A stretch of 64,000 nt of DNA, taken from positions 109,926,001 through 109,990,000 of the forward strand of contig NC_086101.1 of assembly GCF_963921235.1 (NCBI RefSeq), given 5' to 3'. The stretch comes from Mobula hypostoma (taxonomy: Eukaryota). The notes beneath the pieces are model-generated. The model made no database searches. It saw only the letters and a list, made by a program, of their open reading frames with translations, and was not told the DNA's origin. Below, piece by piece: positions 1,629 through 58,140 of the stretch. Every line of letters begins with the position of its first letter. Positions within the stretch are counted from its first letter, which is position 1. The position numbers and the translations under genes are program-made.

Positions 1629-3350
1629 TTGGAGTATTTTGCATCAGTCTTCACTGAGGAAGACATCAGCAGTGTACCGGACACTCAAGGGTGGCAGAGA
1701 AGAGAAGTGTGCGCAGTCACAATTACGACAGAGAAAGTACTCAGGAAGCTGAATAGTCTAAAGGTAGATAAATCTCCCGGACCAGATGGAATGCACCCTC
1801 GTGTTCTGAAGGAAGTAGCTGTGGAGATTGCGGAGGCATTAGCGATGATCTTTCAAAAGTCGATAGATTCTAGCATGGTTCCGGAGGACTGGAAGATTGC
1901 AAATGTCACTCCGCTATTTAAGAAGGGGGCAAGGAAGCAAAAAGGAAATTATAGACCTGTTAGCTTGACATTGGTGGTTGGGAAGTTGTTGGAGCCGATT
2001 GTCAAGGATGAGGTTACAGAGTACCTGAAGGCATATGACAAGATAGGCAGAACTCAGCATGGATTCCTTAAAGGAAAATCCTGCCTGACAAACCTATTAC
2101 AATATTTTGAGGAAATTACAAGTAGGCTAGACAAGGGAGATGCAGTGGATGTTGTATATTTGGATTTTCAGAAGGCCTTTGACAAGGTGCCACACATGAG
2201 GCTACTTAACAAGATAAGAGCCCATGGAATTACAGGAAAGTTACATACATGGATAGGGTGTTGGCTGATTGGCAGGAAACAGAGTGGGAATAAAGGGATC
2301 CTATTCTGGTTGGCTGCCGGTTACCAGTGGTATTCCACAGGGGTCCGTGTTGGGGCCGCTTCTTTTAACATTGTACATTAACGATTTGGATTATGGAATA
2401 GATGGCTTTGTGGCTAAGTTTGCTGACGATACAAAGATAGATGGAGGGGCTGGTAGTGCTGAGAAAACAGAGAGTCTGCAGAGAGACTTGGATAGATTGG
2501 AAGAATGGGCAAAGAAGTGGCAAATAAAGTACAATGTTGGAAAGTGTATGATTATGCACTTTGGCAGAAGAAATAAATGGGCAGACTATCATTTAGATGG
2601 GGAAAGAATTCAAAGTTCTGAGATGCAACGGGACTTGGGAATCCTCATGCAGGATACCCTTAAGGTTAACCTCCAGGTTAAGTCGGTGGTGAAGAAGGCA
2701 AATGCAATGTTGGCATTCATTTCTAGAGGAATAGAGTATAGGAGCAGGGATGTGATATTGAGGCTCTATAAGGCGCTGGTGAGACCTCACTTGGAGTACT
2801 GTGGGCAGTTTTGGTCTGCTTATTTAAGAAAGGATGCGCTGACGTTGGAGAGGGTACAGAGAAGATTCACTAGAATGATTCCGGGAATGAGAGGGTTAAC
2901 ATATGGGGAACGTTTGTCCGCTCTTGGACTGTATTCCTAGGATGTTAGAAGAATGAGGGGAGACCTCATAGAAACATTTCGAATGTTGAAAGGCATGGAC
3001 AGAGTGGATGTGGCAAAGTTGTTTCCTATGATGGGGGACTCTAGTACGAGAGGGCATGACTTAAGGATTGAAGGGCGCCCATTCAGAACAGAAATGCGAA
3101 GAAATTCTTTTAGCCAGAGGGTGGTGAATCTGTGGAATTTGTTGCCACGGGCGGCAGTGGAGGCCAAGTCATTGGGTGTACTTAAGGCAGAGATTGATAG
3201 GTATCTGAGTAGCCAGGGCACCAAAGGTTATGGTGAGAAGGCCGGGGAGTGGGTCTAAATGGGAGAATGGATGAGCTCATGATAAAATGGCGGAGAAGAC
3301 TCGATGGGCCGAATGGCCGACTTCTGCTCCTTTGTTTTATGGTCTTATGG
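1629..3350 (+). mobile_element. 5'-truncated CR1 LINE (RT domain plus 3' tail)
   Basis: ORFs 1629-2381, 2269-2940 and 2953-3258 carry KSPGPDG, NYRPVSLT, YLDFQKAFDKVPH, PQGSVLGP and KFADDT motifs; frameshifted; CR1-type 3' end. Confidence 0.95.
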
Positions 3351-3489
3351 TCTAACCCCACTGCTCAAACATGGAAGGATCAATTCATTGGAGAATAAGT
3401 CTCTGTTTAGGTTCATTCAAATATCTGGATATTAGAGGGGTAGCAAAGATCAGGAGTACTGGGAATGAGGCGAGCCACCAACAGTCTGC

Positions 3490-3950
3490 TGGAGAAATGC
3501 TGTGGGACCATAAGACCAGCAAAGGAGCAGAATTAGGCCACTTGCCCCAGCAAGTCCGGTCCACCATTCCATCATAGCTCATTCCTTATTTCTCTCAACA
3601 CTGTTCTCCTGCCTTCACCCTATAATCTTTGACACCCTTACTAATCAAGAACCTATCAATCTCCACCTTGAATGTATCCAATGACTTTGCCTCCACAGTT
3701 GTCTATGGCAATGAATTCCAGATTCACACCTCTCGTTAAATAAATTCCTCCTCATCTCTGTTCTAAAGGGACGTTCTAGAGGCTGTGGCCACTGGTCCTA
3801 GGCTCACCCACCATTCTCTCTACATCCACTCTATCCAGGCCTTTCAATATTTGATAGGTTTCAATGAGATCCCCCCTCATTCTTCTAAACTCCAGCGGGT
3901 GCAGACCTGAAGCCATCAAATACTCCTCGTATGTTAACCCCAAGTTTTGA
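3490..3950 (-). mobile_element. CR1 LINE 3' fragment
   Basis: ORF 3776-4027 contains LEFRRMRGDLIETYQILKGLDRVD. Confidence 0.8.
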
Positions 3951-5748: not shown

Positions 5749-6096
5749 CGAGGATCCAATGCAACAAGCATAAGGAAGACATCGACGCGGTGAGTGGCTC
5801 CTGGGTCCTACTGCCCTGCCAGTTCAACTGGACAGGGGTGGTGCCTGAGGTGCAGCGTGCGGTCTGGCAGAAGGACTCCATGGTGGTGCACAACACAGAC
5901 CCTCAGCAGCAGAAACACCAGGACCGCATGTACGCGGACCGCACCTCCGTGGCCGCCAACTGGTTCGAGAAGAAAGATCCCTCGCTGAATCTGACCGGGC
6001 TCACTGTGAATGACACTGGAATCTACGAATGCAGGGTGAACACCGACCGGCCACAATCCTTCGACACCTGTGCCACCATCAAACTGACCGTCACTG
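5749..6096 (+). CDS. Gene 1 exon: IgV domain, B7/butyrophilin-like
   Basis: Branch-like CTGAC, acceptor ttccag| at 5748, donor G|GTGGGT at 6096; 348 nt, phase 1-1, open. Motifs VLLPCQF (B strand), AVWQK (C), Y.DRTS, SLNLTGLTVNDTGIYECRV (E/F), IKLTVT (G). Confidence 0.92.
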
Positions 6097-31134: not shown

Positions 31135-31590
31135 ATCCACTCCTAGATTCACCATGTTGTGCATTCATAAATCCTCTTCTGTACACCACTGATGTAGCAC
31201 ATGGTTATTTGAGTTCCTGTTGACTTGGATCAGTATGGCCATTTTCATCTGACCTATCTCATTAACAAGGTGTTTTCTCCCACAGAACTGGCTGTCACTG
31301 GATGTTTTCCATTTTTTGCACAATTCCCAGACAGCTGTGCGTGAAAATCCCAGGAGATCAATAGAATCTGAGATACTCAAACCACTCTATCTGGCACCAA
31401 CAATCATTCCATGATCAAATTCCCTGAGATCCAATTTATTCCCATTCTGATGTTTGGTCTGAAGAACAACTGAACCTCTTGACTGTGTCTGCATGCTTTT
31501 ATGCATTCAGTTGCTGACAGATGATTGGCTGATTAGATATTTGCATTAACGAGGGGTGTACAGGCGTACTTAATAAAGTGGCCACCGAGT
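31135..31590 (-). mobile_element. Tc1-derived deletion element (5' of duplication unit A)
   Basis: Same family as 16540-17100; TAATAAAGTGGCCACCGAGTGTA terminus. Confidence 0.8.
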
Positions 31591-31805
31591 GTACCTGTAG
31601 CGCTGTCTGTAACCCTGAGAGAATCTGAACAGGACGTTGGACCCAGGGGAAGGGTTGGGAAATGATTGGAGGGTGTCAAAACCTGGAACGGATATGGAGA
31701 CAGAGAAATGTGGAAAGCAGAAGCAAAAACACAAAAACAGACGGGGAGGGAGACAGAGTCTGTGTGACCAAGTCAAAGGGTCTACACCCAGGGTGAGAAA
31801 GGTCC

Positions 31806-31848
31806 ATGGGTTCTACACTGTACCTGATGCTACTTCAACTCATGCTGG
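31806..31848 (+). CDS. Gene 2 leader exon MGSTLYLMLLQLML
   Basis: Kozak GTCCATGG, hydrophobic 14-mer, phase-1 donor G|GTGAGT at 31848/31849; joins in frame to ARSSGSG-FRVQQ of V-A. Confidence 0.82.
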
Positions 31849-32400
31849 GTGAGTAGACCCAGCTCTAGTCGTCACCCCTTCACTCAAGAGTTTGACAAGA
31901 GGGGAGGGATGTTTTCAATAGTGGGTGCGTCTGGGACCAGAGGGAATATCCTCAGAATAGAAGTAAGTCCCTTTACAACAGGGATGAGGAGGAATTTGTT
32001 CAGCCAGAGTGTGGTAAATCTGTGGAATTCATTGCCACAGACAACTGTGGAGGCTACGTCTCTGGGTGTACTTAAAGCAGAGTTCAATGGTTAATGACTA
32101 ATAAGGGTGTTAATGGTTAAGGGAAGAAGGCAGAAGAGTGGCTATGAGGGGGATAATAAATCAGCTGGGATTGAATGGTGGAGCAGACTCGATGGAACAA
32201 ATGGCCTAAATGTGCTCCTAGGTCTTATGGTGTAATGGTCACCTCTTCCTCCCCACCCCTCTTGTCTTAGGGTGAAGGTTAGTCCATCAGCTAGGGGGGC
32301 AGGGGCTTGTCTGGTGCCGAGTGTTACAGGCTGCTTGTCTGCCAGCTGAGATGCGGTCAGAGGTTCCCAAATGACTGTTTGCTCCCTCCCTTTCCCTCAG

Positions 32401-32769
32401 CACGGTCCAGTGGAAGTGGGTTTCGGGTGCAGCAGGCAAGCAACGTGGAAGGTAAAGAGGGTGAGTCCGTCACTCTCCCCTGCTCCTTCACGTACCCGGA
32501 CACCTCCACACCCAGACGCATCGACATTAGATGGAGAGTCGGTAACTACAACGGCACATATATATTCAGTTCCTTACTGAACCACACCACCCACGAATAC
32601 CGAGGCCGGATTGAGTTCCTGGGCTCCCCACTGCAAGACAAGACCGGTTCTATCCACTTACACCGGCTGAACCAAGTGGACTCCAACACCTATTTCTGTG
32701 GCATGACCATGTTTGGGGAAGAAAATAAGATGTGGCAGGGCGCCTCAGGGACCATCCTGAAAGTGAACG
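32401..32769 (+). CDS. Gene 2 IgV exon A, PILR-like
   Basis: Acceptor tttccctcag|, donor G|GTGAGC; 369 nt, phase 1-1, open; VTLPCSFTYP, IRWRVGNY, YRGRI, GSIHLHRL..DSNTYFC, WQGASGTILKVN. Confidence 0.92.
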
Positions 32770-32924
32770 GTGAGCTGGTGCTTCCAAGTTTTCTTCTTCT
32801 TAGCTGGATAATGATTCCAATCAATCTGAAAACACCCTTCCCCCAAAACACACACATGCACAGCCCTCCTGAGAGGCTCATTGACCAGGTGAATGTTTTC
32901 ATTTCCAAATGTTTCAACACCTGC

Positions 32925-33495
32925 ATACACTCAGTGGCCACCTCCTGTATCTAATACAGTGGCCACAGTGCGTATGTTCATGGCCTTCTGCTGCTGTAGC
33001 CCATCCACTTTGAGGTTTGATGTTTAGTGTGATCAGAGATGCTCATCTGCACACCAACACTGTAACACATGGCTACTTGAGTTACTGTCGCTTCCTGTCT
33101 GCTTGAACCCGTCTGGCCAACATCCTCTGAAATTTTTCAATAATAAAGCATTTTCACCCACAGAACCGTCAATCACTGGATTTTTTTTGTTTTTTTTCAC
33201 ACCATTCTCTGTAATCTTTAGCAATTGTTGTGTGTGAAGATCCCAGGAGATCAATAGTTTCTGGGATTCTGAATCCACTGTGTCTGGCAACAACAATTAC
33301 TCCATGGAGTCACTGAGTCAAAGTCACTGAGATCAAATTTCGTTCCCATTCTGATATTTGGTCTGTGCAACACCTTAACCTTTTGACCATGCCTGTGTTT
33401 TACACACTGTGTTGCTGACGCATGATTGGCTGATTGGGTATTTGCACTTATGAGGACCGTACAGATGCACCTAGTAAAATGGCCACTGAGTTTCC
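32925..33495 (-). mobile_element. Tc1-derived deletion element (5' of duplication unit B)
   Basis: CACTCAGTGGCCAC / GGCCACTGAG termini; same family. Confidence 0.8.
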
Positions 33496-33707
33496 AAGTA
33501 GCACAGTCTGAGAGTAAATGAGCAGAAGGTTGGGCTGAGTGGAGGTGCTGGGAAATGATTAGAGGGTGCTGAAATTAGAAACTGATGTGGACACAGAAAT
33601 GTGGCAAGCAGAAGCAATAACTCGGATACAGACGGGGAGTGAGGCAGGGTCTGTGTCACCGAGGCAAAGGGTTTATACCCAGGGAGGAGTGTCGGCCGAG
33701 AGGGTTC

Positions 33708-33750
33708 GTGAACTCCAGCCTGTGGCTGATGCTGCTGAAACTCACGTGGA
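33708..33750 (+). pseudogene. Inactivated paralogous leader exon of unit B
   Basis: GTGAACTCCAGCCTGTGGCTGATGCTGCTGAAACTCACG aligns to leader A; ATG>GTG, and the donor position reads ATGTTG. Confidence 0.7.
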
Positions 33751-34279
33751 TGTTGTGGACCCAGCTCGAGTTGCTCTAGACCCAGCTCAGGAGTTTGACA
33801 AGAAGGGAGGGGTGTTTCCAGTAGTGGGGGAGTCTGGGACCAGAGGGCACAGCCTCACAATACACCCTTTACAGAAGTGAGGAAGGATTTCTTCAGCCAG
33901 AGCGTGGTAAGTCTGTGGAATTCATGGCCACAGACGGCTGTGCAGGCCATGTTATTGGGCATATTTAATGTGGAGTTTCAAAGGTTATTGATTAGTAGAG
34001 GTGTCAACTGTTAAGAGGAGAAGGCTGAAGAATGGCCTTGAGAGGGATAATAAATTATCTGGGATTGAATGGCAGAGCAGACTCGATGGAACGAATAGCC
34101 TCTCTCCTAGGTCTTATGGTTACATGTTCCTCCCTCCCCTCTTTTCTTAGAGTGGAGTTTAGTCTACCAGCCAGGGCAGGGGCTTGTTAGGTGCTGAGAG
34201 TATTATGGACTTGTTGCCTGCAGGATGAGATGCGGTCAGAGGTTCCCAAATGACTGTTTTCTCCCTGCCTTTCCCTCAG

Positions 34280-34648
34280 CACGGTCCAGTGGAAGTGGGT
34301 TTTGGGTGCAGCAGGCAAGCAACGTGGAAGGTAAAGAGGGTGAGTCCGTCACTCTCCCCTGCTCCTTCACGTACCCGGACACCTCCACACCCAGACGCAT
34401 CGACATTAGATGGAGAGTCGGTAACTACAACGGCACATATATATTCAGTTCCTTACTGAACTACACCATCCACGAATACCGAGGCCGGATTGAGTTCCTG
34501 GGCTCCCCACTGCAAGACAAGACCGGTTCTATCCACTTACACCGGCTGAACCAAGTGGACTCCAACACCTATTTCTGTGGCATGACCATGTTTGGGGAAG
34601 AAAATAAGATGAGGCAGAGCGCCTCTGGGACCGTCCTGAAAGTGAACG
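34280..34648 (+). CDS. IgV exon B, near-identical to exon A
   Basis: Intact AG/GT, 369 nt, open; 7 substitutions versus A (R>W, H>Y, T>I, W>R, G>S, I>V, one silent). Confidence 0.85.
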
Positions 34649-34794
34649 GTGAGCTGGTGCTTCAAAGTTTCTGTTCTTGGTTGGATAATAATTGTGATGA
34701 GCCTGAAAACAACCGTCGTACAAACACCTCCCCAGAGGCTGTCTGACCAGCTGAATATTTCGACCAGTTCATAGTTTTCATTTCCGAATGTTTC

Positions 34795-35020
34795 AACGCG
34801 GCAGCGTGGTTAGCGTAATGCTGTTGCAGTGCCAGCGACTCAGGTTCAATTCCCGCTGCTGCCTGTCAGGAGGTTGTAGGTTCTCCCTGTGCTCACGTGC
34901 GTTTCCTTCAGGTGTTCCGGTTTCCTCCCACAGTCCAAAGACCTACAGGTTTGTAGATTGATTGATCATGCTGGCGTTGGGCTGAAAGGGTCTGCTACCA
35001 TGCTGTATCTCTAATTAAAA
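34795..35020 (+). mobile_element. tRNA-derived V-SINE-type element
   Basis: A/B-box-like head (GGTTAGCG...GGTTCAATTCCC) and core TCCGGTTTCCTCCCACAGTCCAAAGAC. Confidence 0.8.
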
Positions 35021-36102
35021 ATGTAAAATGTCTGCAATATTTTCTTTAAAGTTTCAGAGAGCTCTCATCGCTAGGCATCATTGGGGAGTGCTGTGGCCCT
35101 GAATCAGAGTCCGAGACCTTTGCAATATTTTGCTCTAGTTTTTATTTGCCAGAAGCAAAATCATGTTGTTTTGTGACAGCACTACAGTGTAAAGATATAA
35201 TTACTTTCTTTTCAAATCTTTTTATTGTTATATTATACAAAAGAAATAACACGAGTACATTGAAATAACAACACTTACAATGTCTGTTAAAAGACATTAT
35301 CTTAAAGATTGAAAAATTGTGATAACAAAAAACCTACCAAGCAGAAAAAGTGAGACAATTACTAAAAATAAAGTGATATAATTACTAAAAATAACAGAGG
35401 ACAAATAACAAGGTTCATGGGACTGCAGACCATTCAGAAATCTGATGGCAGAGGGAAAGAAGCTGATCCTAAGATGATGAGAGGCATCAACTGTGTGGAT
35501 AGCCAGAGGCTTTTTCCTGTGGTTGTAATGGCTAACACAAGGGGACATATTTTGTAGGTGCTTGGAAGTAGGCACAGAGGGACTGCCTGAGATAAGTTTT
35601 TCACACACGGAGAGGTGAGTGTCAGTGACAGCGGTAGAGGTGGATACAATAGAGTCTTTTAAGACACTCTTAGATAGATACATGAAGCTTAGGAAAATAG
35701 AGGGCTATGTGGTGGGGAAATTCTAGGCAGTTTTCTAGAGTAGGTTACATGGCTGGCACAACGTTGTGGGCCGAAGAGCCTGTAATGTGCTGTAGATTTC
35801 TATGTTCTAAATCATTGAGTATGGGTCTTCAGACTGCTGTATCTCATCCCTGATGGTAGCAACGAGAAGAGAGAATGTCCTGGATCATGAGTGTACTTGA
35901 TCATGGATGCCACCTTCTAGAGCTGTTTACAGTCATTATTCTGATTGGGGCGGTGTCCTGCTCTGTGGGCAGTGCTACCTTTAAGAGGACATGGCTTCAG
36001 AAAGACGTTCAGTACCTCTGGGACCCTGTGTAATTACTGGACCTCTGGGCTAGTCTGTCCCACCCCAGGGTCTGTGGTAACCTGACCAGAAGTAACGAGG
36101 TC

Positions 36103-36104
<2 letters not shown>

Positions 36105-36147
<43 letters not shown>

Positions 36148-36172
36148 CCTCTCTCTCTCTCTCTCTCTCTCT
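36105..36172. repeat. (CT)n microsatellite
   Basis: Read directly from the sequence. Confidence 0.95.
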
Positions 36173-39100
36173 CCCATATGACTTTCATATGGGTGGTGGT
36201 TTTTACTGTAGTCAGTGAGGGTGCATGTTTACCTGTAGCAACATACAAAACACTAGAAGAGGGCTTTACTCTTTGGAGCAAAAGAGGATGAGAGTAACTT
36301 GGTAGAGGTGTATAAGATGCACACATCAAATGGACAGCCAGAGACTTTCCCCTAGGGTGGAAACGGCTGATACGAGGAGGTATCAATTTTAAAGTGAATG
36401 GAGGAATTTATGGGGGGGAGAGGGATGTCAGAGGCAGACCCAGCGAGTGGTGGGTGCGTGGAACACCCAGCCAGGGGTGGTGGCAGAGGCTGATACACTA
36501 CAGACATTTAAGAGACTCTTAGATAGGCACATGGATGATAGAAAAAAATGGAGGGCTATATAGGAGGGAAAAGTTAGATTGCTCTTAGAGTAAGATAGAA
36601 CAGTATAGCACATGAACAGGGCATTCAGACTACAATGTTGTGTCAAACCAACTAAAAAGGAATTGAAAAACACCCAAACTCTAATCTGTCCTACTTACAC
36701 AATATCCATATCCCTCCATCTTCCTCACATCCATGTGCCTATCCAAATGTCTCTTAAAAGCCTCTAATATATTTGCCTCTACCACTATAACAGGCTGTGC
36801 ATTCCAGGCATCCACCACTCTCTGAGTGAAAAACTTACCCCTCACACCCCCTCCTCTGAACTGACCCCCTCTCACCTTCAATGCAGCCTTCGCCACCAGA
36901 GGAAACAACCCAAGTTTATCCAGCCTCTCATATAACCATATAACAATTACAGCATGGAAACAGGACATCTCGGCCCTTCTAGTCCGTGCCGAACGCTTAC
37001 TCTCACCTAGTCCCACCGACCTGCACTCAGCCCATAACCCTCCATTCCTTTCCTGTCCATATATCTATCCAATTTAACTTTAAACGACAACATCGAACCT
37101 GCCTCAACCACTTCTGCTGGAAGCTCGTTCCACACAGCTACCACTCTCTGAGTAAAGAAGTTCCCCCTCATGTTACCCCTAAACTTTTGCCCTTTAACTC
37201 TCAACTCATGTCCTCTTGTTTGAATCTCATGATAGCACATACCCTCTAAACCAGGCAGCATTACAGCACAACACACCTCTTCTAGACCCTCTCCAAAGAC
37301 TCAACATCCTTCCTATAGTGGGGTGATCAGAGCTATATGCAATAATGCAGATGTGGCCTAGCCAGAATTTTTTATAAAGTTGCAATATAACCTCTTGACT
37401 TTTGGACTCGGTGTCTTGAATAATAAAAGCAAGCATTCCATAAGCCTTCCTAACCATCCTATTGACCTGTGTAGCCACTTTCAAGGAGCTATCCCAAGAT
37501 CCCTCTGCTCAGCAACACCGTTAAGGATCTTGCCCTTAACAGTGTACTGTCTCCTTGCATTTGCCCCACCAAGGTGCACCACCTCACATTTATCTGGGTT
37601 AAACCTGATGTGACATTTCTCTGCCCTTATCTGCAACAGTAGGTTGAAAGGTCAGCGTGTCATCGTGGGCCAAAGGGCCTGTGTCGTGCTGCAATGTTGT
37701 ATGGTCTGTATTCTAAGTCAATCGGTCAGGCTGCATCTGTAAAGAGGAATAGACGGTCACTGTTTTGAGATGAGACTCTTTATCCAGACTGAAAAACAGA
37801 GGGTAGAGAGCCAGGATAAAGAATGGGGTGGGGTGGGGAAGGTATAGAGCAGGAGCTGGTAAGCGATCGGTGGATCAGGGCAGGAGCGGTGACAGGAAGA
37901 TGGAGGAGTGGGGTAGTGGGAACAGAAAGAGAAGCTGGCAGGAGGTAGTTGGAGCTGACCACGGGCTGCAGGTTCAGCTTGACATCTGAAACTTTGACAA
38001 ACCTCTATGGATATGTAGTGGAGAGAACATCATTGAAATATTCCCACAATTTATGGACTCACTTTTAAGGACACATCATCTCATGTTCTCAATATTTCCT
38101 GCTTACTTATTAATATAATTTCTTTGCCTTTGTATACAAACAGTTTGTTGTCTGTGCACACTGGTTAAACACCCAAATTGGTGCATCTTCCATTGATTCT
38201 GTTATGGTTATTATTCTATTATGGATCTATTGAGTATGCCCCCAAGAAAATGAATCTCAGGGTTCATGGTGACATGAATGTAGTTTGATAATAAATTTAC
38301 TATGAACTTTGAACTTTTGAGAAGCAGGTGGATCATGGAACCAAGTGAGGGAAGTAGGGAGGGAAAATGGGAACAAAGGGAGGAACATTGTACTTTGACT
38401 CAAAACTCTGACCAACCATTTCCCTCCACAGATGCTGCTCGACCCGTTAAGTTTCTCCAGCAGTTTGTCTGCTGCTCCAGATTCCAGCACCGATGGTCCC
38501 CTCCTGGACTGTTGGTGCGGTTTCCAGTAGGAAGTAGGCAGTAGGTGGGACCTTGGGCAGGGGTGGAGAAATGATGGGAGGGTGTCGAAACCAGGTACGG
38601 ACGAGGAGACAGGGAGATGAGAACAGCAGAAGCAACAACACAGAAATAGACTGGGTGTGGGGCAGAGTCTGTGTCTCCGAGGGAAGGGGAATACATCTGT
38701 TCTCGCTGATTACCTGGATTCTGACAACTTGCAGTCACACTCATGCACAAGGAGAATGGATCAGCCCTGTCACTGACTTGTTCCGAAGCTTAGAATTGTC
38801 AAATTTTGTCTAGTAATCTGTATGCAACTTCATCTTTGTCCTGATCCTTGAGCAATTTCTAATTCCATCATTTGAATATACATTCAGTGGTCTCTTAGGT
38901 ACCTCCTGTACCTAATAAAGTGGCCACTGAGTGTATGTTCATCGTCTTCTGCTGCTGCAGTCCATCCACTTCAGGGTTTGACGTGTTGTGCTCTCCAAAA
39001 GGCAATTCTGCTCACCACTGCTATAGCACATGATTACTTGAGTTACTGTCGCCTTGCTGTCAGCTTGAACCTGTTTGACCATCCCCAGACCTCTCTCATC

Positions 39101-39397
39101 AATAAGGCAATTTTACGCACATAACTGTCACACACTGCGTTTTGTTTTTGCATTTTTTTACACCATTCTCTGTAAACTCTGTAAACTGTGAAAAGCCCAG
39201 GTGATCAGCAGTTTCTAAGATACTTTCGTACAATTCTCTGTAAACTCTTATAGACACTGTTGTGTGTGAAAGTTCCAGCTCAGTCGTTTCTGAGTTACTC
39301 AAACAGATCCGCCTGGCACCAACAATCATTCCACAGTCAAAGTCACTTATATCACATTTCATCACCATTCTGATGTTTGGTCTGAACATCAACTGAA

Positions 39398-40650
39398 TGT
39401 CATAAGCGGGGCATTGGGAGTGGACCCAAATGCAAGACACAGACACTGAAGTACAAGGAACAGGACTAGGACTAGAGTTAAGCAAGCAAGGGAAGTGGGG
39501 AAGAAAGGATGCTGGACATTGACACAGGCTCTGGATGAGACCAGGATGCAGGGCCTGGTCTAGAACATGGACAAGAAACATGGAACCCGGACAAGGAACT
39601 AGGAACAAGGAGCCTGGACTAGGAACACAGAACTCTGGAACTAGAGCCTGGACAAGGACCCGCAACCTAGGTCTTGGTTGGGACTAGCAACCTGGGTCCT
39701 GACTCGGAACCGGAACCTGGGTCTAGGCTAGGACTTGGGCCTAGGATCTTGGCAAAGACAGGACGTAGCTACAGAACAGGATGTGGAACTCCTGCACAGG
39801 ATGAGGCACATGGGCGAGAACACAAAGCCTTGACTTGGACAGAACGAGGTTCTTGGACGTGGCTTGGACAGAACGAGGTTCTTGGACTGGACGAGTTTCT
39901 TGGACATGGCTTGGATTGGACGGGGTACTGCTGGGCTGGGCGAAGCACAAGGACAGGATGAGACCCCAAAGCCTTGACTTGGTCTTGGGAGACAGGAATG
40001 CAGAACACAGAGCCTTGGTCTTGGGAGACAGGAACGCAGAACACAGAGCCCTGGCCTTGGGAGACAGGAATGCAGAACACAGAGCCTTGGCGTTGGGAGA
40101 CAGGAATGCAGAACACAGAGCCTTGGCCTTGGGAGACAGGAATGCAGAACACAGAGCCTTGGACTTGAGAGACAGGAACACAGGGACATGGAACACAGAG
40201 CCTGGACCCCTCCTTGGGGACAGGACATGGGGCCGGGGCTCTACACAGAATGCTGAACACGACGAGATGGTTCCCAACACTAGGTAGCAGCAAATGGCCG
40301 GACCTACCTAGCGAAGGCATGGACACAGAGAAAGTTCAAAACAACAATGGACAGTTCCTTATCTAGATGCAGCAAGGCTCCGGTCTTGCTCTGGCAGTAG
40401 AACCTGACAGCAATACAGGCGAGGACGCAGGCGAGGTTGCAGGGAAGGCTTCAGGAGGAAGGTGAAGGGAAGGGAACAGTCCAGCAAATGAAGCTGAACC
40501 CAGGAGCTATTTATGTAGCCGGCCCAAAACAGAATCATGCGCCTCAGTTAAGGCACACAACAGAACAAAGGAAAACCAGAAAACCTGGAATACGGATTGA
40601 TGGACCAGACTGTGAACTGGAATACGGTCTTCACAGACCGGACCATGACA
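39398..40650. mobile_element. Solo LTR (1253 bp) with 5-bp TSD
   Basis: TGTCAT...ATGACA perfect inverted ends; TSD CTGAA at 39393-39397 and 40651-40655. Confidence 0.88.
39979..40180. repeat. 36-bp minisatellite, 5 full copies plus a partial copy, inside the solo LTR
   Basis: Unit TTGGYCTTGGGAGACAGGAAYGCAGAACACAGAGCC. Confidence 0.95.
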
Positions 40651-41799
40651 CTGAACCTCTTGACCATGTCTGCATGCTTTTATGCATTGAGTTAATGTCA
40701 CATGATTGGCTGATTGAGGCCTTTTGTTGGCTGGATTGACCAAGGATATTGTGTCCTAGCTGTCTATGTGATACGCAAGCCAAGGCAGCAGCTCATGTAG
40801 CAGGCTCCCCCTCTCCACTCATCTGATGAATCCCAAGGAAAAACCAAGACCGATACCATTTGGCACCAGTGGCGTCGTAGGAGTTGTCTGTCAATTTTGA
40901 ACAACCTAGGGGCACCTTAAGGATTCCAGCTCTGGATTTTCCTTGGAGTGTACTCCTGAAGCCTTCCCCATGAGTGGGTATAGCTGCAAGGCAGTGGAGG
41001 TTGGAGATCAGTTTTCCTTCTCCTAGATGAGCTGCCAACCATGGCTAATGAGCCTCATCTGCCCAAAGTGACTGGTTTTAAGGTGCTAGTGACCCCACTC
41101 CCTTCGCCCTTTCTCCTGTCAGTAGAAACAGTTCCACCAGGCTTAGTAGCTAAGCCACCGGTGAAGGCCAGGAGTTGAACTTGGTTCTCAGAGTCTATTT
41201 GCGGCGCATGCCATTGGGAGCATATAATAGGTAGTAGGAGGTTACCTCCATTACTACCCCTGGCTATCAGAACCTTAGGAAACCAAGGTTAAGAAATGGC
41301 TGATTAGATATTTTCATTAATGAGCAGGTATACGGTTGTACTTGATAAAGAGGCATCGAGTGCACAAATACCAATCACCATATAGACTTCAGCTGTTAAA
41401 TCCAATTCAATCAACGTGTTAAAGGCTAATAATATTTGAGAATTAATTAAAGTAACTGTTCAATGGCAGGTAACAGTAAACAAGCTTTCCTCTGTCAGCA
41501 CATCACCTTAACCCTTGCCTGCTACAGCGTCCATTTATCCAGGGACAGGGTGCCAGTACAAGAGGACTCCACACTGATACTTGGCAGTTTTTATTATGTC
41601 CTACGATGTACTGCTGCCGCATAAAACAAATTTTACGACATATGCCAGTGATATTAAAATTGATTCTGATTCTGATGTCCACAGTCTGGAAACGTGGAAG
41701 CTGCAGGTCATTCGGAGTTGGAACCTGGTACTGGGGAAGGGAAATTTGATACATCAGCCAAACGACGGAGGATTGTCTGATGATGAGAGAATATATTTA

Positions 41800-42080
41800 A
41801 TTATTTATATTTATTTAGCGATACAGCACGGAACAGGCCCTCCCAGCTATACGAGCCGCACCACCCAGGAATCCACTGATTTAACCCTAGCCTAAACACA
41901 GGACAATTTACGATGACCAATTAACCTATTAACCGGTACGACCTTGCACTGTGGGAGGAAACCGGAGCACCCGGAGAAAACACACGTGCAGACGGGAAGG
42001 ACGTACACATTTTCCTAGAGCGGACACCGGAACTGAACCCGAACTCTGATGCCCCGAGCTGTAATAGCGTTGCATTAAGT
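41800..42080 (-). mobile_element. tRNA-derived V-SINE-type element
   Basis: CTGTGGGAGGAAACCGGAGCACCCGGAG core on plus, i.e. the reverse complement of the V-SINE core. Confidence 0.8.
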
Positions 42081-42216
42081 TATGGGCTGGTTTTCTGTCC
42101 ACAGTCTGAGGGCAGGGGCTTGTCTGATGCTAAGAGTATTATGGGTTGATTGGCTGCCTGGTGCAATGTGGTTGGAGGTTGCCAAAATGACAGTTTGCTC
42201 ACTCCCTTTCTCTCAG

Positions 42217-42599
42217 CGCAGACTGATGGATGTGGGTTCTGGTTGGAGAATCCGGCATACATAGAGGCTATAGAGAAGGGGACTACTACTCTTCTCTGCT
42301 CCCTCACTTACCCAGATATCTACACACCCGGAGACATTCATATCTCATGGAAAGTTGATCATTTCAGGACAGATATATTCACGTTTTTGCTAAACAAGAC
42401 AATTGGTGAATACCGAGGCCGGATCGAGTTGCTGGGCAACCGTCTTCGAGACAAGATGGGCTCCATCCGCTTACATCGGCTGAAAGGAAGTGACTCCAAT
42501 TTCTATTTCTGCCGTGTGACAATTTTGGAAGATCATCATCAGCTGATAGAATGGCAAAGCATCTCGGGGACGTTTCTGTCAGTGAGAAATGGGTCCTGA
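42217..42599 (+). CDS. IgV exon C, PILR-like, homologous donor lost, reads into NGS* stop
   Basis: Acceptor tctctcag| at 42216; open frame ...DIHISWKVDHFR...YRGRI...DSNFYFCRV...WQSISGTFLSVR; roughly half the residues identical to A by hand alignment; ATGGGT at 42589-42594 where A/B have GTGAGC; TGA 42597-42599. Confidence 0.75.
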
Positions 42600-43740
42600 A
42601 TCCTTACCCTGACCTCTGCTCTTGTCTGAAGGTTCTTTCAATTAATTCCCGTGCTTCAATCCAGCTTCATGTCTTCACATTTTCACACTGCAGGGCAACA
42701 GTCCACTCGGCCTACCTCGGCTGACTTACATCCGTATTAATTAACTCACATCCGTCCTACCGAAGGCTTTCGGCCTGAAACATGGACGGTACTTTTTTCC
42801 CCCAGAGATGCCGCCTGGTCTGCTGAGTTCCTCGAGCATTTAGCGTGTGCTCCTTGTATTTCCAGTATCTGAAGATTTTCTCCTGTCCGCACTAATCTCA
42901 TCTCCTGGCACTTGGCCCCCTCACCTCCTATCCATGGATAGTTCATGTACTCGTCTAGACCCTTCCTAAATATATCTGTCACTCTGCTTCCGCCCCACTC
43001 TCTGGCCGCGAGTTCCAGGTACTTACCACTCTCTGGGTGAGAAAGTTCCCTCTCAGACACCCTCCAAATCCCTTACTCCTCATCTTGACATTTTATATAT
43101 GAAGTTGTAAAATATTGTGAATGTGAAATGAGAAATATTTCCTTTTATCTACTCTGTCTGTACTCTCATGGATATGTGCACCTCAATCTTGTTCCTTTCA
43201 AACCACCTCCATTCCAGGGAATGAAGACCCATCACTGAAGCACATTGTCCCAGATAACATCCCATGAAGATTCTCTGCACCATCTCCAGTGAAAACACCC
43301 CTGTCCCGCTCTTCCTCAGCACTGCATGGTCCTGGCCTCATTAATGCACCCAGTGTTTTTCAGCTCACACTTATCCGGATTAAACTTCTTAGGTGATTTC
43401 CCAGCCTCATTTTACCAACACATTGGGATTGAGTATAGAAATGATTGCCCTCCACACTGTCAACAATTCCATTGATCTTTGCCTTGTTCTGCAGGGAACA
43501 CTGCAGCACAATACAGGCTCCTTGGCTCATGATGTTGTGCCAACCTTTTATCTTACTTTAAAATCAGTTTACACCCATCCCTCCTACATAGTCCTCCATT
43601 TTCCATCGACGAGGTCCCTAACTTCTAGTTTTGTAAAAGGCCCCTGATGTATCTTCCACTACCCCAGCTCCTCACATGGTGTCAGTTTCTCTGCCCTCTT
43701 CTCCTGTCCCGAAGTCACTGCGCTGAATTCCATCTCACAG

Positions 43741-43896
43741 GAGGCTCGTTGACCCCCAGAGTGACCGCAGTAACTCTAAGGATGCGGAAGCTGAGCCAAG
43801 GCTCCATCCTGATGATCCGGTCAGCGCTGGTTTTCGGACTGCAGGCAGTGGAGTGGACCGTGGGCACTTACCTGATCAAGAGGAGCCCAGTTGCAG
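43741..43896 (+). CDS. Candidate stalk plus transmembrane exon with intramembrane Arg (GSILMIRSALVFGLQAVEWTVGTYLIKR)
   Basis: Polypyrimidine acceptor catctcacag|, donor GCAG|GTAACT; 156 nt, phase 1-1, open; hydrophobic stretch followed by KR. Polar Q/E in the segment lowers confidence. Confidence 0.55.
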
Positions 43897-43963
43897 GTAA
43901 CTTGCGTTTTCTGACGACGCAGGTCACTGCCGGACCGAATGACTCACATCGGCCTCCCGTTAG

Positions 43964-43980
43964 ACTTGACGTACTGGTGA
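43964..43980 (+). CDS. Candidate last coding exon (D)LTYW*
   Basis: 67-nt intron with CTCAC branch and ctcccgttag| acceptor; in phase; TGA at 43978-43980; GTGAGT donor at 44003. Confidence 0.3.
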
Positions 43981-44489
43981 GGGCCGCAGTATCCGGCACC
44001 ATGTGAGTCTCTGAATGGTGGCTCCATACTCCATTACACTCCTTCCTCCTTAACCCGATGTTCACACCTCTGTGATTCTTGGCATACCGAGCCTATCCTT
44101 CCCTTCCCCCCACCACACCTCCATCAAAAAGTAGGAGCAGGACGAGGCTACTTGGCCCAGCATATCTGCCCCATTATTAAAGTCAGTTTGGCTGATGTAC
44201 CCCAGCACTCATCTTCCCTTCCCTGCCGGTTGCCAGGAGCGTCAGTACTGTAAGGTCCATCTCCTTCCCATCTGAAGTGATCTCGGCTCAAGGATCAAGA
44301 ATTCCAGAGAAGCCCCAACTTCCACACCAGTGGTAAATAACCGCCCCCTCTGATGGATGTAAAGAGAATGGAGAGATATACTTGTGTAGCCAGGTTACTT
44401 AAGTATGCCTTTAATAGTTTTATTAGTTCAGAACAGCATAGTATGCTGAATGGCCTGTTCCTGCACTGTTCTGCTCTATCCTCATTGGC

Positions 44490-48466: not shown

Positions 48467-49527
48467 TCTCTGGAAAGTTTTTCTCTGTATCTCGGTACAA
48501 TAATCTGATTTGCCATTGTACTTATCTGTCCAAACAGGTAGCTTCATGGTAGTGGTCATAAGGTGACTTGGATCACTGGCATTTAATCTTCCCACCTTCC
48601 CAAATGTTAGCGACTAAGTGCAAAACCAAAGTTTCTGTGCTGCGTGGATGTGTCCTTGGGTCTTTGAGCACTACCTATAACAGGTGCATTATCCTTAGGT
48701 CCTTGGTTTAGACCGTAAGACATAGGAGCAGAATTAGTCCATTTGGCCCATCGAGCCTGCTCCGCCATTTCACCATGGCTGATCTATTTCTCTCTCGCCC
48801 CATTCTCCTGTATTCTCCCCATAACCATTGACGCCCTGACTAATCGAGAATCTATCACCTCTGCTTCAAATATGTCCAATGGTTTGGCCTCCACAGCTGT
48901 CTGTGGCAATGAATTCCACAGATCCACCACTCACTAGCTAAAGGAATTCTTCCTCATCACTGTTCTCTAGGGACATCCCTCTTTTCTGAGACTGTGCCCT
49001 CTGGTCCTAGACTCCCCCATTATTAGAAACATCCACTCTATATAGGCCTTTCAATATCCGATATTCATTTTTCTAAACTCCAGTGAGTACAGGCCATCAA
49101 ATGCTTCTCGTACATTAACAGTTTGATTCCCAGAATCATTCTCGTGAACTTCCTCTAGACCATCTCCAATGCTAGCACATCCTTTCTTAGATAAGGTGTG
49201 CAACATTGCTCACAATACTCCAAGTGTGGCTTGGCCTATGCCTTATAAAGATTCAGCAATACATCTTTGCTTTTGTATTCTGACCCTCTTGAAATGAATG
49301 CCAATGATTGTCTGACTCAGCACCGTTGCAGGGTGTGGGAACCCGTGGCCTTGCAGGTCAGACTCCAGAAATCCCTGACCTATGAGGCCTGTGGGGGGAT
49401 TTCACTGTCAGTTGAATTCTGGTTCATATTTAAATGTAAAACAGAATAAAATAGGTGAAAAAAGAATAAGGGACTGTACTTTAAAGCATCTACGATCTTA
49501 GAAATACGCTGTGGATCTTTATGGTAG

Positions 49528-57119: not shown

Positions 57120-58140
57120 AGACCATAGATATAGGAGCAGAACTAGGCCATTTGACCCATTGAGTCTATTCCGCCATTTCATCATGTCTGAAGCAACTTT
57201 CCTCTCAACCCCAATCCACTGCCTCTACTCCCCCCCTCCATATCCCTTCATGCTGTGACCAATCTAGAATCTATCAATCTCTGCCTTAAATATACATAAT
57301 GATTTGGTCTCCATGGCTGCCTGTGGCAACGACTTCCACAGATTCACCACTCTCTGGCTAAAGAAATTCCTCCTATCTTTGTTCTAAAGGGACACCCCTC
57401 TATTCTGAGGCTGTGTCCCCTGGTTTTAGACTCTTTCACCATAAGAGATATCCTCTCCACATCCACTCTATCGACACCTTTCACCATTCAATAGGTTCAA
57501 TGAGCTCACCTCTCATTCTTCTACATTCTAGTGAATACAGGCCCAGAGCCATCAAATGCTCTTCATATGCCAAGCCATTCAATCTTGGAATCATTTTGGT
57601 GAACCTCCTTTGAACCCACTCCAGTTTCAGCACATCCTTTCTAAGATAAGTGACCCAAAACTGCTCACAATACTCCAAGTGAGGCCTCATCAGTGCTGTA
57701 TAAAGTCTCAACATTACATCCTTCTAGTTCTCTTGAAATAAATGCTAACATTGCATTTGCCTTCCTCGCCACAGACTCAACCTGAAAATTAACATTTAGA
57801 GAATCCTGCACAAAGACTCGCAAGTCCCTTTGTGCCTCAGAGTTTTGTATTTTCTCTCCATTAGAAAAGTCACCTTTTCATTTCTTCTACCAAAGTGCCT
57901 ATCCATACACTTCCCAACACTGTATTCTATCTGCCACTTCTTTGTCCATTCTCCTAATCTGTCTGGGTCTGTCTAGCCTCTCTACTTCCTCAAAATTATC
58001 TGCCACTCCACCTATCTTTGTATTGTCTACAAACTTTGCAACAAAGCCATCAAATTCCATCATCCAAATCATTGGCATATAATATAAAATGCATCAGTTT
58101 CAACACAGACCCCTGTGGAACACAACTAGTCACTGCAGCC
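57120..58140 (-). mobile_element. CR1 RT 3' fragment and tail
   Basis: LYTALMRPHLEYCEQFW...RRMRGELIE; CVPQGSVL..YANDLD. Confidence 0.85.

Follow-up and report, generated by a model that had tools for sequence, protein, structure and literature searches.

In the literature, the PILRs are treated as a small family of receptors with a single V domain, and a review of the family makes no mention of sharks or cartilaginous fish (PMC13358205). Our own literature searches on shark PILR, PILR evolution, and skate MDIR found no relevant study in the library searched. Here, we examine a PILR-like locus within a 64-kb stretch of the genome of the ray Mobula hypostoma (NC_086101.1, 109,926,001 to 109,990,000), hereafter the window, to which all coordinates refer. 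The initial annotation of this locus proposed a tandem-V activating receptor of undescribed architecture. However, RefSeq already predicts tandem-V activating PILR-like receptors (P0162 and P0157, listed below), and the architecture is therefore not new. The kind of system is known, namely, PILR-like paired receptors with multi-V members in RefSeq, and the locus is an unannotated member of it with an extra duplicated V1 exon. According to our analysis, it is best read as a lineage-specific, partly decayed paralogue of the elasmobranch PILR-like paired-receptor family, a reading to which we assign a probability slightly above one half (about 0.55).

An exon scan, tblastn, and Pfam together recovered one leader, three V exons starting in phase 1, and one transmembrane (TM) exon, just where the initial annotation had placed them. 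The exons and the sequence that follows them are given below (a slash marks the splice point).

31806 to 31848 (+): leader (signal peptide) exon, 43 nt, with ATG, hydrophobic core, and donor G/GTGAGT, ending in phase 1.
32401 to 32769 (+): V-A exon, V-set, V1 lineage, 369 nt, phase 1-1, Pfam V-set E 3e-12.
34280 to 34648 (+): V-B exon, V-set, near copy of V-A, 369 nt, phase 1-1.
42217 to 42599 (+): V-C exon, V-set, V2 lineage, with a good acceptor and an open frame to the TGA at 42597 to 42599.
43741 to 43896 (+): stalk and TM exon of the activating type, 156 nt, phase 1-1, with an Arg in the span.
43897 to 44006 (+): read-through tail of 36 residues without Tyr, TGA at 44004 to 44006; an ATTAAA lies at 44176.

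The leader exon encodes MGSTLYLMLLQLML plus 1 nt and is similar to the leaders of shark PILR-like proteins, e.g., MGSALRLILLQL. Pyrimidine-rich AG acceptors and GTGAGC donors flank both V-A and V-B. All three V exons pass the Pfam V-set threshold, and a tblastn search of the entire window with each V translation returned only V-A, V-B, and V-C (E 1e-33 to 1e-84), the next matches having E values above 2. They stand in one orientation behind the one intact leader, in place of the single extracellular V domain of PILR, and V-B is separated from V-C by 7.5 kb of transposon-rich DNA. V-A and V-B contain the two canonical Cys residues only, while a further Cys precedes the A strand of V-C, at residue 6. 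No C2-set exon was found in the window.

The PILR affinity of these domains is visible in both sequence and predicted fold. Among all PDB sequences, the best match of V-C is human PILR alpha (E 4.5e-10, over the full domain), and PILR alpha is also the best full-domain match of V-A (E 2e-9); matches of V-A to pIgR score slightly better but are partial (residues 15 to 103), with an E value summed over several domains. The HMMER alignment of V-C with human PILR alpha pairs DIHISWKVDHF with DVRISWRRGHF, YFCRV with YFCRV, and WQSISGT with WQSIEGT, as the initial annotation had stated. The comparison with the PILR alpha structure that it had proposed was run on an AlphaFold model of V-C built from a 31-sequence alignment (pLDDT 88.6, pTM 0.82), for which Foldseek placed PILR alpha/beta at ranks 1 to 5 with template modeling (TM) scores of 0.81 to 0.85, followed by sialoadhesin, Siglec-15, and other Siglecs. 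The annotation had also set the canonical B-strand Cys of these domains against its loss in PILR. The observation itself stands, as the B-strand Cys of V-C aligns to a Phe in human PILR. Its reading as a departure from PILR was rejected, since every non-mammalian PILR-like sequence aligned keeps the Cys and only the mammalian ones have Phe, so that the loss is confined to mammalian PILRs in this alignment. On these sequence and model comparisons, the domains are identified as PILR/Siglec-type V domains and the locus as belonging to the PILR family. The F-strand Arg, which contacts sialic acid in PILR alpha (PMC13358205), is present in V-C (YFCRV, together with WQS), whereas V-A and V-B have Gly in its place (YFCGM) and V-B additionally reads RQ for WQ. 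Because the sialic-acid-binding Arg is absent from V-A and V-B, any ligand of theirs would differ from that of classical PILR.

A HMMER search with V-A retrieved 390 proteins at E <= 0.001. Names were recovered for 30 of them and include PILR alpha/beta in bat, lizards, turtles, caecilians, elephant shark, skate, numbfish, cat shark, and sharpnose sevengill shark; most PILR names of these relatives come from automatic annotation. No window-encoded protein of this locus is among the HMMER matches listed. We built an IQ-TREE phylogeny of 63 V domains, leaving out same-gene isoforms and most multi-domain amphibian matches. The two domains of Hemitrygon akajei P0002 join V-A and V-B (100/99) in a group that is sister to the V1 domains of two-V receptors (99/93), while V-C falls with the V2 domains (86/69). 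All three lie in a two-V batoid clade (99/94) nested in a chondrichthyan clade (99/95), and the latter belongs to a set that also contains bat PILRB and PILR-named proteins of lizard, turtle, and caecilian. The tree does not resolve the base of this set, and gar and lungfish proteins named Siglec-15 fall inside it. Thus, of the PILR ancestry that the initial annotation wished to examine by V-domain phylogeny, a set shared with PILR-named proteins was recovered, in which Siglec-15-named proteins are also included. On these sequence grounds, strict orthology to mammalian PILR is likely.

The protein with which V-A and V-B group, P0002 of the red stingray H. akajei (NCBI name "turtle homolog B-like"), is 80% identical to V-A and consists of two V-A-type domains, with translated intron sequence before them and intron read-through after them. 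The P0002 gene is 2451 nt long, which equals the V-A to V-B spacing in the window. Since P0002 holds the same domain pair with equal spacing, the tandem V-A/V-B pair predates the divergence of this ray and the red stingray.

The multi-V relatives with which the locus was compared are the following.

P0162 (LOC132396364), Hypanus sabinus, 320 residues: leader, V1, V2, stalk, and TM with Arg; short tail.
P0157, Mobula hypostoma, 306 residues: leader, V1, V2, stalk, and TM with Arg; tail shorter than that of P0162.
P0161, H. akajei, 384 residues: two V domains, uncharged TM, and motifs of the immunoreceptor tyrosine-based inhibitory motif (ITIM) type (I.YSVV, CLY.DV).
P0163, H. sabinus, 344 residues: two V domains, an isoform skipping the TM, ITIM-type tail.
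P0165, M. birostris, 381 residues: two V domains, uncharged TM; the tail diverges before the ITIMs, which are present in isoform P0164.
P0004, Pristis pectinata, 371 residues: two V domains, uncharged TM, ITIM-type motifs.
P0160, M. hypostoma, 461 residues: three V domains.
P0006, P0009, and P0013, caecilians, 358 to 699 residues: two or three tandem PILR-like V domains.

Stingray, devil ray, and sawfish members normally follow the plan leader-V1-V2-TM and comprise both activating forms, with Arg and a short tail, and inhibitory forms with ITIMs; ITIM-bearing two-V partners occur in four species (P0161, P0163, P0165, and P0004). In sharks, chimaeras, and skates, each member carries a single V domain, and the motif IL.IR...L..W..GIYL recurs in the membrane span of those that are activating. 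The exon order of the locus, V1-type, V1-type, V2-type, and TM(Arg), is that of the batoid two-V plan with one extra V1 copy. Leader, V1-lineage, V2-lineage, and TM exons fit the two-V receptors in order and lineage, but the V2 exon is without a phase-1 donor.

This last defect was followed in the splicing frames. The V2 exon of relatives ends after ...LSVR plus one base, where V-C reads AGA A/AT, and a donor scan found no GT donor in phase 1 anywhere in 42540 to 42700. The only strong V-C donor (TCA/GTGAGA, at 42582) is in phase 0 and, joined to the TM exon, yields ...GTFLSEAR followed by a stop; read-through yields ...LSVRNGS and the stop at 42597 to 42599. We also scored the V domain cores, taking the alignment columns at which >=80% of the other 30 sequences agree. 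V-A departs from the consensus at none of 30 such columns and V-B at one of 30, the Trp of the WQ motif (WQ to RQ), as against 9 of 32 in V-C, among them Pro27, Phe30, and Gln12. The V-C branch (0.32) is the longest among V2 domains, the others measuring 0.02 to 0.14 in the tree. By comparison, about 20% of the V-A residues differ from the stingray orthologue and none of them at a core position, which argues that V-A and V-B would be translated and under selection.

In the TM exon, alignment to P0162 and P0157 places the acceptor orthologous to that of relatives probably at 43762, with 43741 as an in-phase alternative. With the TM exon of a red stingray protein named PILRA by NCBI, the exon shares 72% identity over 40 residues, and with those of H. 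sabinus P0162 and H. akajei P0001 it shares 67 to 72%. The membrane span reads SILMIRSALVFGLQAVEWTVGTYLI. Its Arg, at span position 6, is conserved in six relatives and kept from sharks to rays. However, Gln and Glu are found where all six compared relatives have Leu and Val, and relative to the closest ray proteins (H. akajei P0001 and H. sabinus P0162) Gln, Glu, and Thr stand for Leu, Val, and Ile. The best 19-residue Kyte-Doolittle mean is 1.42, against 2.16 to 2.51 in relatives and a customary threshold of 1.6 for a membrane span. The exon thus combines the basic TM residue of an activating member and a read-through tail free of ITIM and Tyr with a weakly hydrophobic span.

Downstream, the tail exon conserved in sharks and rays (D..R.KKET.QETQL) was not found in the window with four tail peptides, nor were other C-terminal exons of 150 relatives. 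The initial annotation had described a TM exon followed by a short tail without ITIM. The TM exon, which carries an Arg, and the lack of an ITIM were borne out, but the spliced six-residue tail exon (acceptor at 43923) was rejected because the intron would be only 26 nt long (43897 to 43922), far below what vertebrate spliceosomes use. The same annotation had suggested looking for inhibitory paralogs nearby; no inhibitory TM or ITIM-type tail exon is present in the 64-kb window. Taken together, the rear half of the locus looks worn, with a lost donor and core changes in V-C, polar and acidic changes in the TM span, and a missing tail exon.

The front half carries the marks of duplication that the initial annotation had proposed as tandem copying of a leader and V exon. 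Self-comparison showed that a 1.8-kb unit (31165 to 32918) recurs at 33033 to 34797 with 78% identity, in agreement with that proposal; besides the leader, intron, and V exon, the unit includes one end of a transposon and a 5' region of 160 nt. The conserved noncoding parts of the units are as follows.

31630 to 31786 (+): first copy of the 5' promoter-like region, immediately before the intact leader; 76 to 78% identical to copies 2 and 3.
33552 to 33760 (+): 5' region copy 2 with a dead leader; ATG and GT donor lost.
38539 to 38695 (+): 5' region copy 3, truncated, with no recognizable leader; 76% identical to 31630 to 31786.
32290 to 32400 (+): conserved 3' intron end before V-A; homologous stretches at 34170 to 34279 and 42107 to 42216.

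The 5' region has these three copies only in the window, each upstream of a V unit. Aligned to unit 1, the dead second leader shows ATG changed to GTG/GAG and GGTGAGT changed to GATGTTG, and the alignment of the third copy, between V-B and V-C, stops where the leader should start. A leader-like ATG near 38757 was considered and rejected, as alignment to the other units gives it no support. A V1 remnant was sought between V-B and V-C, and none was found. Over their 369 nt, V-A and V-B show 7 differences (six amino-acid-changing and one silent), whereas their flanks are 75 to 80% identical with many gaps, and the high identity is limited to about 32340 to 32790. Because the exons are near identical and the flanks are not, this indicates that the pair has been homogenized by recent exon-limited gene conversion.

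Other repeated and conserved stretches were noted in the same region. The last ~110 nt of the intron are 80% identical between the V-A and V-C units, whose exons are only 69% identical; this intron end is also conserved with H. akajei, where model P0002 translates it as its N terminus, and it may act in splicing or regulation. Within the transposon-rich DNA that separates V-B from V-C lies a short tandem array (39960 to 40230, +; units of about 54 to 58 nt, 85% identity), and a (CT)n microsatellite of about 60 nt lies at 36108 to 36170.

Run searches with the V-A and TM exons listed four small RNA runs of the species, which we checked over 31600 to 35000 and 42100 to 44100. The TM exon appeared in none of the four, and 6% of the V-A words were present in one run. 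An exactly matching contig of 173 nt (depth 2, 32713 to 32885) crosses the V-A donor unspliced and may derive from genomic DNA or pre-mRNA. Intronic repeat pieces at 31942 to 32055, 33766 to 33879, and 34906 to 35000 showed very high summed RNA depth (word depth in the tens of thousands), and this abundant, transcribed interspersed repeat family is also found at 3020 to 3815, 48708 to 49034, and 57122 to 57424.

How the exons would be used bears on the choice among readings. Joined directly, leader, V-A, V-B, and TM exon give 937 nt, open and in frame, and leader, V-A, and TM exon are likewise open. A membrane-bound product would most likely join leader, V-A, V-B, and the TM exon and skip V-C. 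If such a product inserts in the membrane, its Arg would be expected to recruit a signaling adaptor, by analogy with PILR beta and DAP12. The rear half may either be decaying within the same gene or be the remnant of a separate activating gene to which the 5' fragment at 38.5 kb would belong. Several observations weigh against partial decay. V-C would stay in frame if a weak donor (TGG/GTCCTG, at 42593) were used with the upstream one of two tandem acceptor AGs (exon start 43760), although rescue by this route is unlikely to judge from the sites themselves. The TM frame is open over 52 codons, and it keeps its Arg and good splice sites, so that decay is not proven. Gln or Glu in a membrane span is tolerated in some multi-subunit receptors. 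Furthermore, relatives were compared as proteins, and decay is read from window DNA set against them. The four small RNA runs gave no coverage or junctions of the exons, only transposon pieces, and bear neither way on this question.

One alternative is the model of the initial annotation, in which an intact gene yields a competent leader-VA-(VB)-TM activating receptor at the cell surface, signaling through an adaptor held by the TM Arg. Its in-frame joins and the absence of an ITIM were found as proposed; what has weakened is the competence of the product. Each of the two splice products has an open frame, splice sites are good in the leader, V-A, V-B, and TM exons, the cores of V-A and V-B are kept (0/30 and 1/30 changed), the Arg is conserved from sharks to rays, and two-V activating relatives exist (P0162 and P0157). 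Nevertheless, the hydrophobicity of the span is under 1.6, with Gln and Glu where six relatives have Leu and Val, the tail exon otherwise conserved from sharks to rays is missing, and the adjoining V-C exon is disabled. Moreover, no V-A-type protein with a TM is on record in any species, P0002 ending in intron read-through, and the four small RNA runs gave no exon coverage. We therefore regard a competent receptor as doubtful.

Unlikely, too, in our judgment is a division of the stretch into two adjacent units, one a V-A/V-B gene with a secreted product or none and the other the pseudogene remnant of an activating two-V gene, of which the 5' fragment at 38.5 kb, V-C, and the TM exon would survive, V1 and the tail having been lost; the whole stretch might then be untranslated. 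The third copy of the 5' region does sit between V-B and V-C, and in H. akajei the V-A-type pair (P0002) and the V2-TM gene (P0001) are modeled separately, with no other gene listed within 10 kb of either. The defects gathered in V-C, the TM exon, and the tail, as well as the long V-C branch (0.32 versus 0.02 to 0.14), point in the same direction. On the other hand, the preserved core of V-A and V-B, despite the roughly 20% residue difference from the stingray orthologue, speaks for translation and selection, the window offers no alternative TM or terminal exon for V-A/V-B, and no remnant of a V1 was found between V-B and V-C. A related and equally improbable view is that V-A/V-B forms a selected, Arg-less module of new, non-sialic-acid specificity that has captured its TM exon from the decayed neighboring activating gene. 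If exon capture were true, the locus would represent a new tandem-V activating receptor within a batoid-specific PILR expansion from one V to two or three. We thus favor a partly decayed paralogue, with a preserved front half and a worn rear half.

Elsewhere in the window, a single V-set exon (5793 to 6095, +) matches the N-terminal part of the Scyliorhinus torazame "PILRA" model P0166 with 51% identity (E 1.4e-34). In that model, the matching part is joined to a PILR-like V domain and a TM(Arg) exon; the V gene at 5793 to 6095 thus has PILR-like genes as conserved neighbors in both shark and ray, and two genes have probably been merged in the shark model. Its use as a marker of the mammalian PILR locus was rejected for want of a specific PDB match. 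A comparable case is P0003 of Heterodontus francisci and its isoforms, named pIgR-like, which contain three near-identical V-stalk-TM(Arg) units plus a fourth, uncharged TM with a long tail; here, automatic annotation has most likely merged a tandem array of genes.

The database survey indicates that elasmobranchs possess a sizeable paired PILR-like family, whose activating span motif is kept from sharks to rays and whose V domain is doubled in stingrays, devil rays, and sawfish and tripled in one case. This pattern is apparently unpublished and is more interesting than the locus itself. The locus opens no new kind of system, and this copy may be non-functional; it adds a sub-lineage in which a duplicated V1-type domain is kept uniform by gene conversion, as an example of exon gain and loss in such clusters. 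These results are of use to comparative immunology and can help to correct automatic names such as "turtle homolog B-like" and "pIgR-like."

Among described V-domain families, the V domains of CD300, pIgR, TREM, and skate MDIR have an extra Cys pair beyond the canonical pair, which is found neither in V-A and V-B, with two Cys, nor in V-C, with one additional Cys. Siglec V domains (sialoadhesin, Siglec-15, Siglec-7/8, and MAG) are the next-best fold matches of V-C (TM scores of 0.7 to 0.85). Unlike the locus, Siglecs have C2-set domains after a single V, and their sequence scores against it are below those of PILR. With mammalian PILR alpha/beta, the locus shares the ISW...HF, YFCRV, and WQSI.GT motifs and the F-strand Arg, the latter in V-C only, as well as the paired activating/inhibitory logic and a basic TM residue in the activating form. 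This residue is Lys in PILR beta and Arg at the ray locus. Mammalian PILRs, in contrast, have one V domain and no B-strand Cys, whereas the domains of the locus keep the Cys and V-A and V-B have Gly for Arg.

Closer are the single-V PILR-like genes of cartilaginous fish, such as the Amblyraja radiata PILRB array L001 and Scyliorhinus torazame PILRA/B, which belong to the same chondrichthyan clade, have the same TM(Arg) motif and a short tail in their activating forms, and are likewise arranged in tandem arrays. The A. radiata array (JAAGWR010000720.1, about 2979 to 34644) comprises four tandem units ~10 kb apart, each with a PILR-like V exon and a stalk/TM exon 1.2 to 1.7 kb later. Unlike the locus, shark, chimaera, and skate PILR-like genes have one V exon each. 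Closest of all are the batoid two-V receptors predicted by RefSeq, which fall in the same V-domain clade: H. sabinus LOC132396364 (activating) and LOC132396977 (inhibitory), M. hypostoma LOC134346254 and LOC134346255, the H. akajei models, and P. pectinata LOC127586541. The locus follows them in its order of leader, V1-type, V2-type, and stalk/TM exons and in the TM motif ILMIR...W.VG.YLIK with its Arg. It differs from them in that its V2 exon has no in-frame donor, its span contains Gln and Glu, the conserved tail exon is missing, and its V1-type exon is duplicated, forming a separate sub-lineage together with H. akajei P0002 only.

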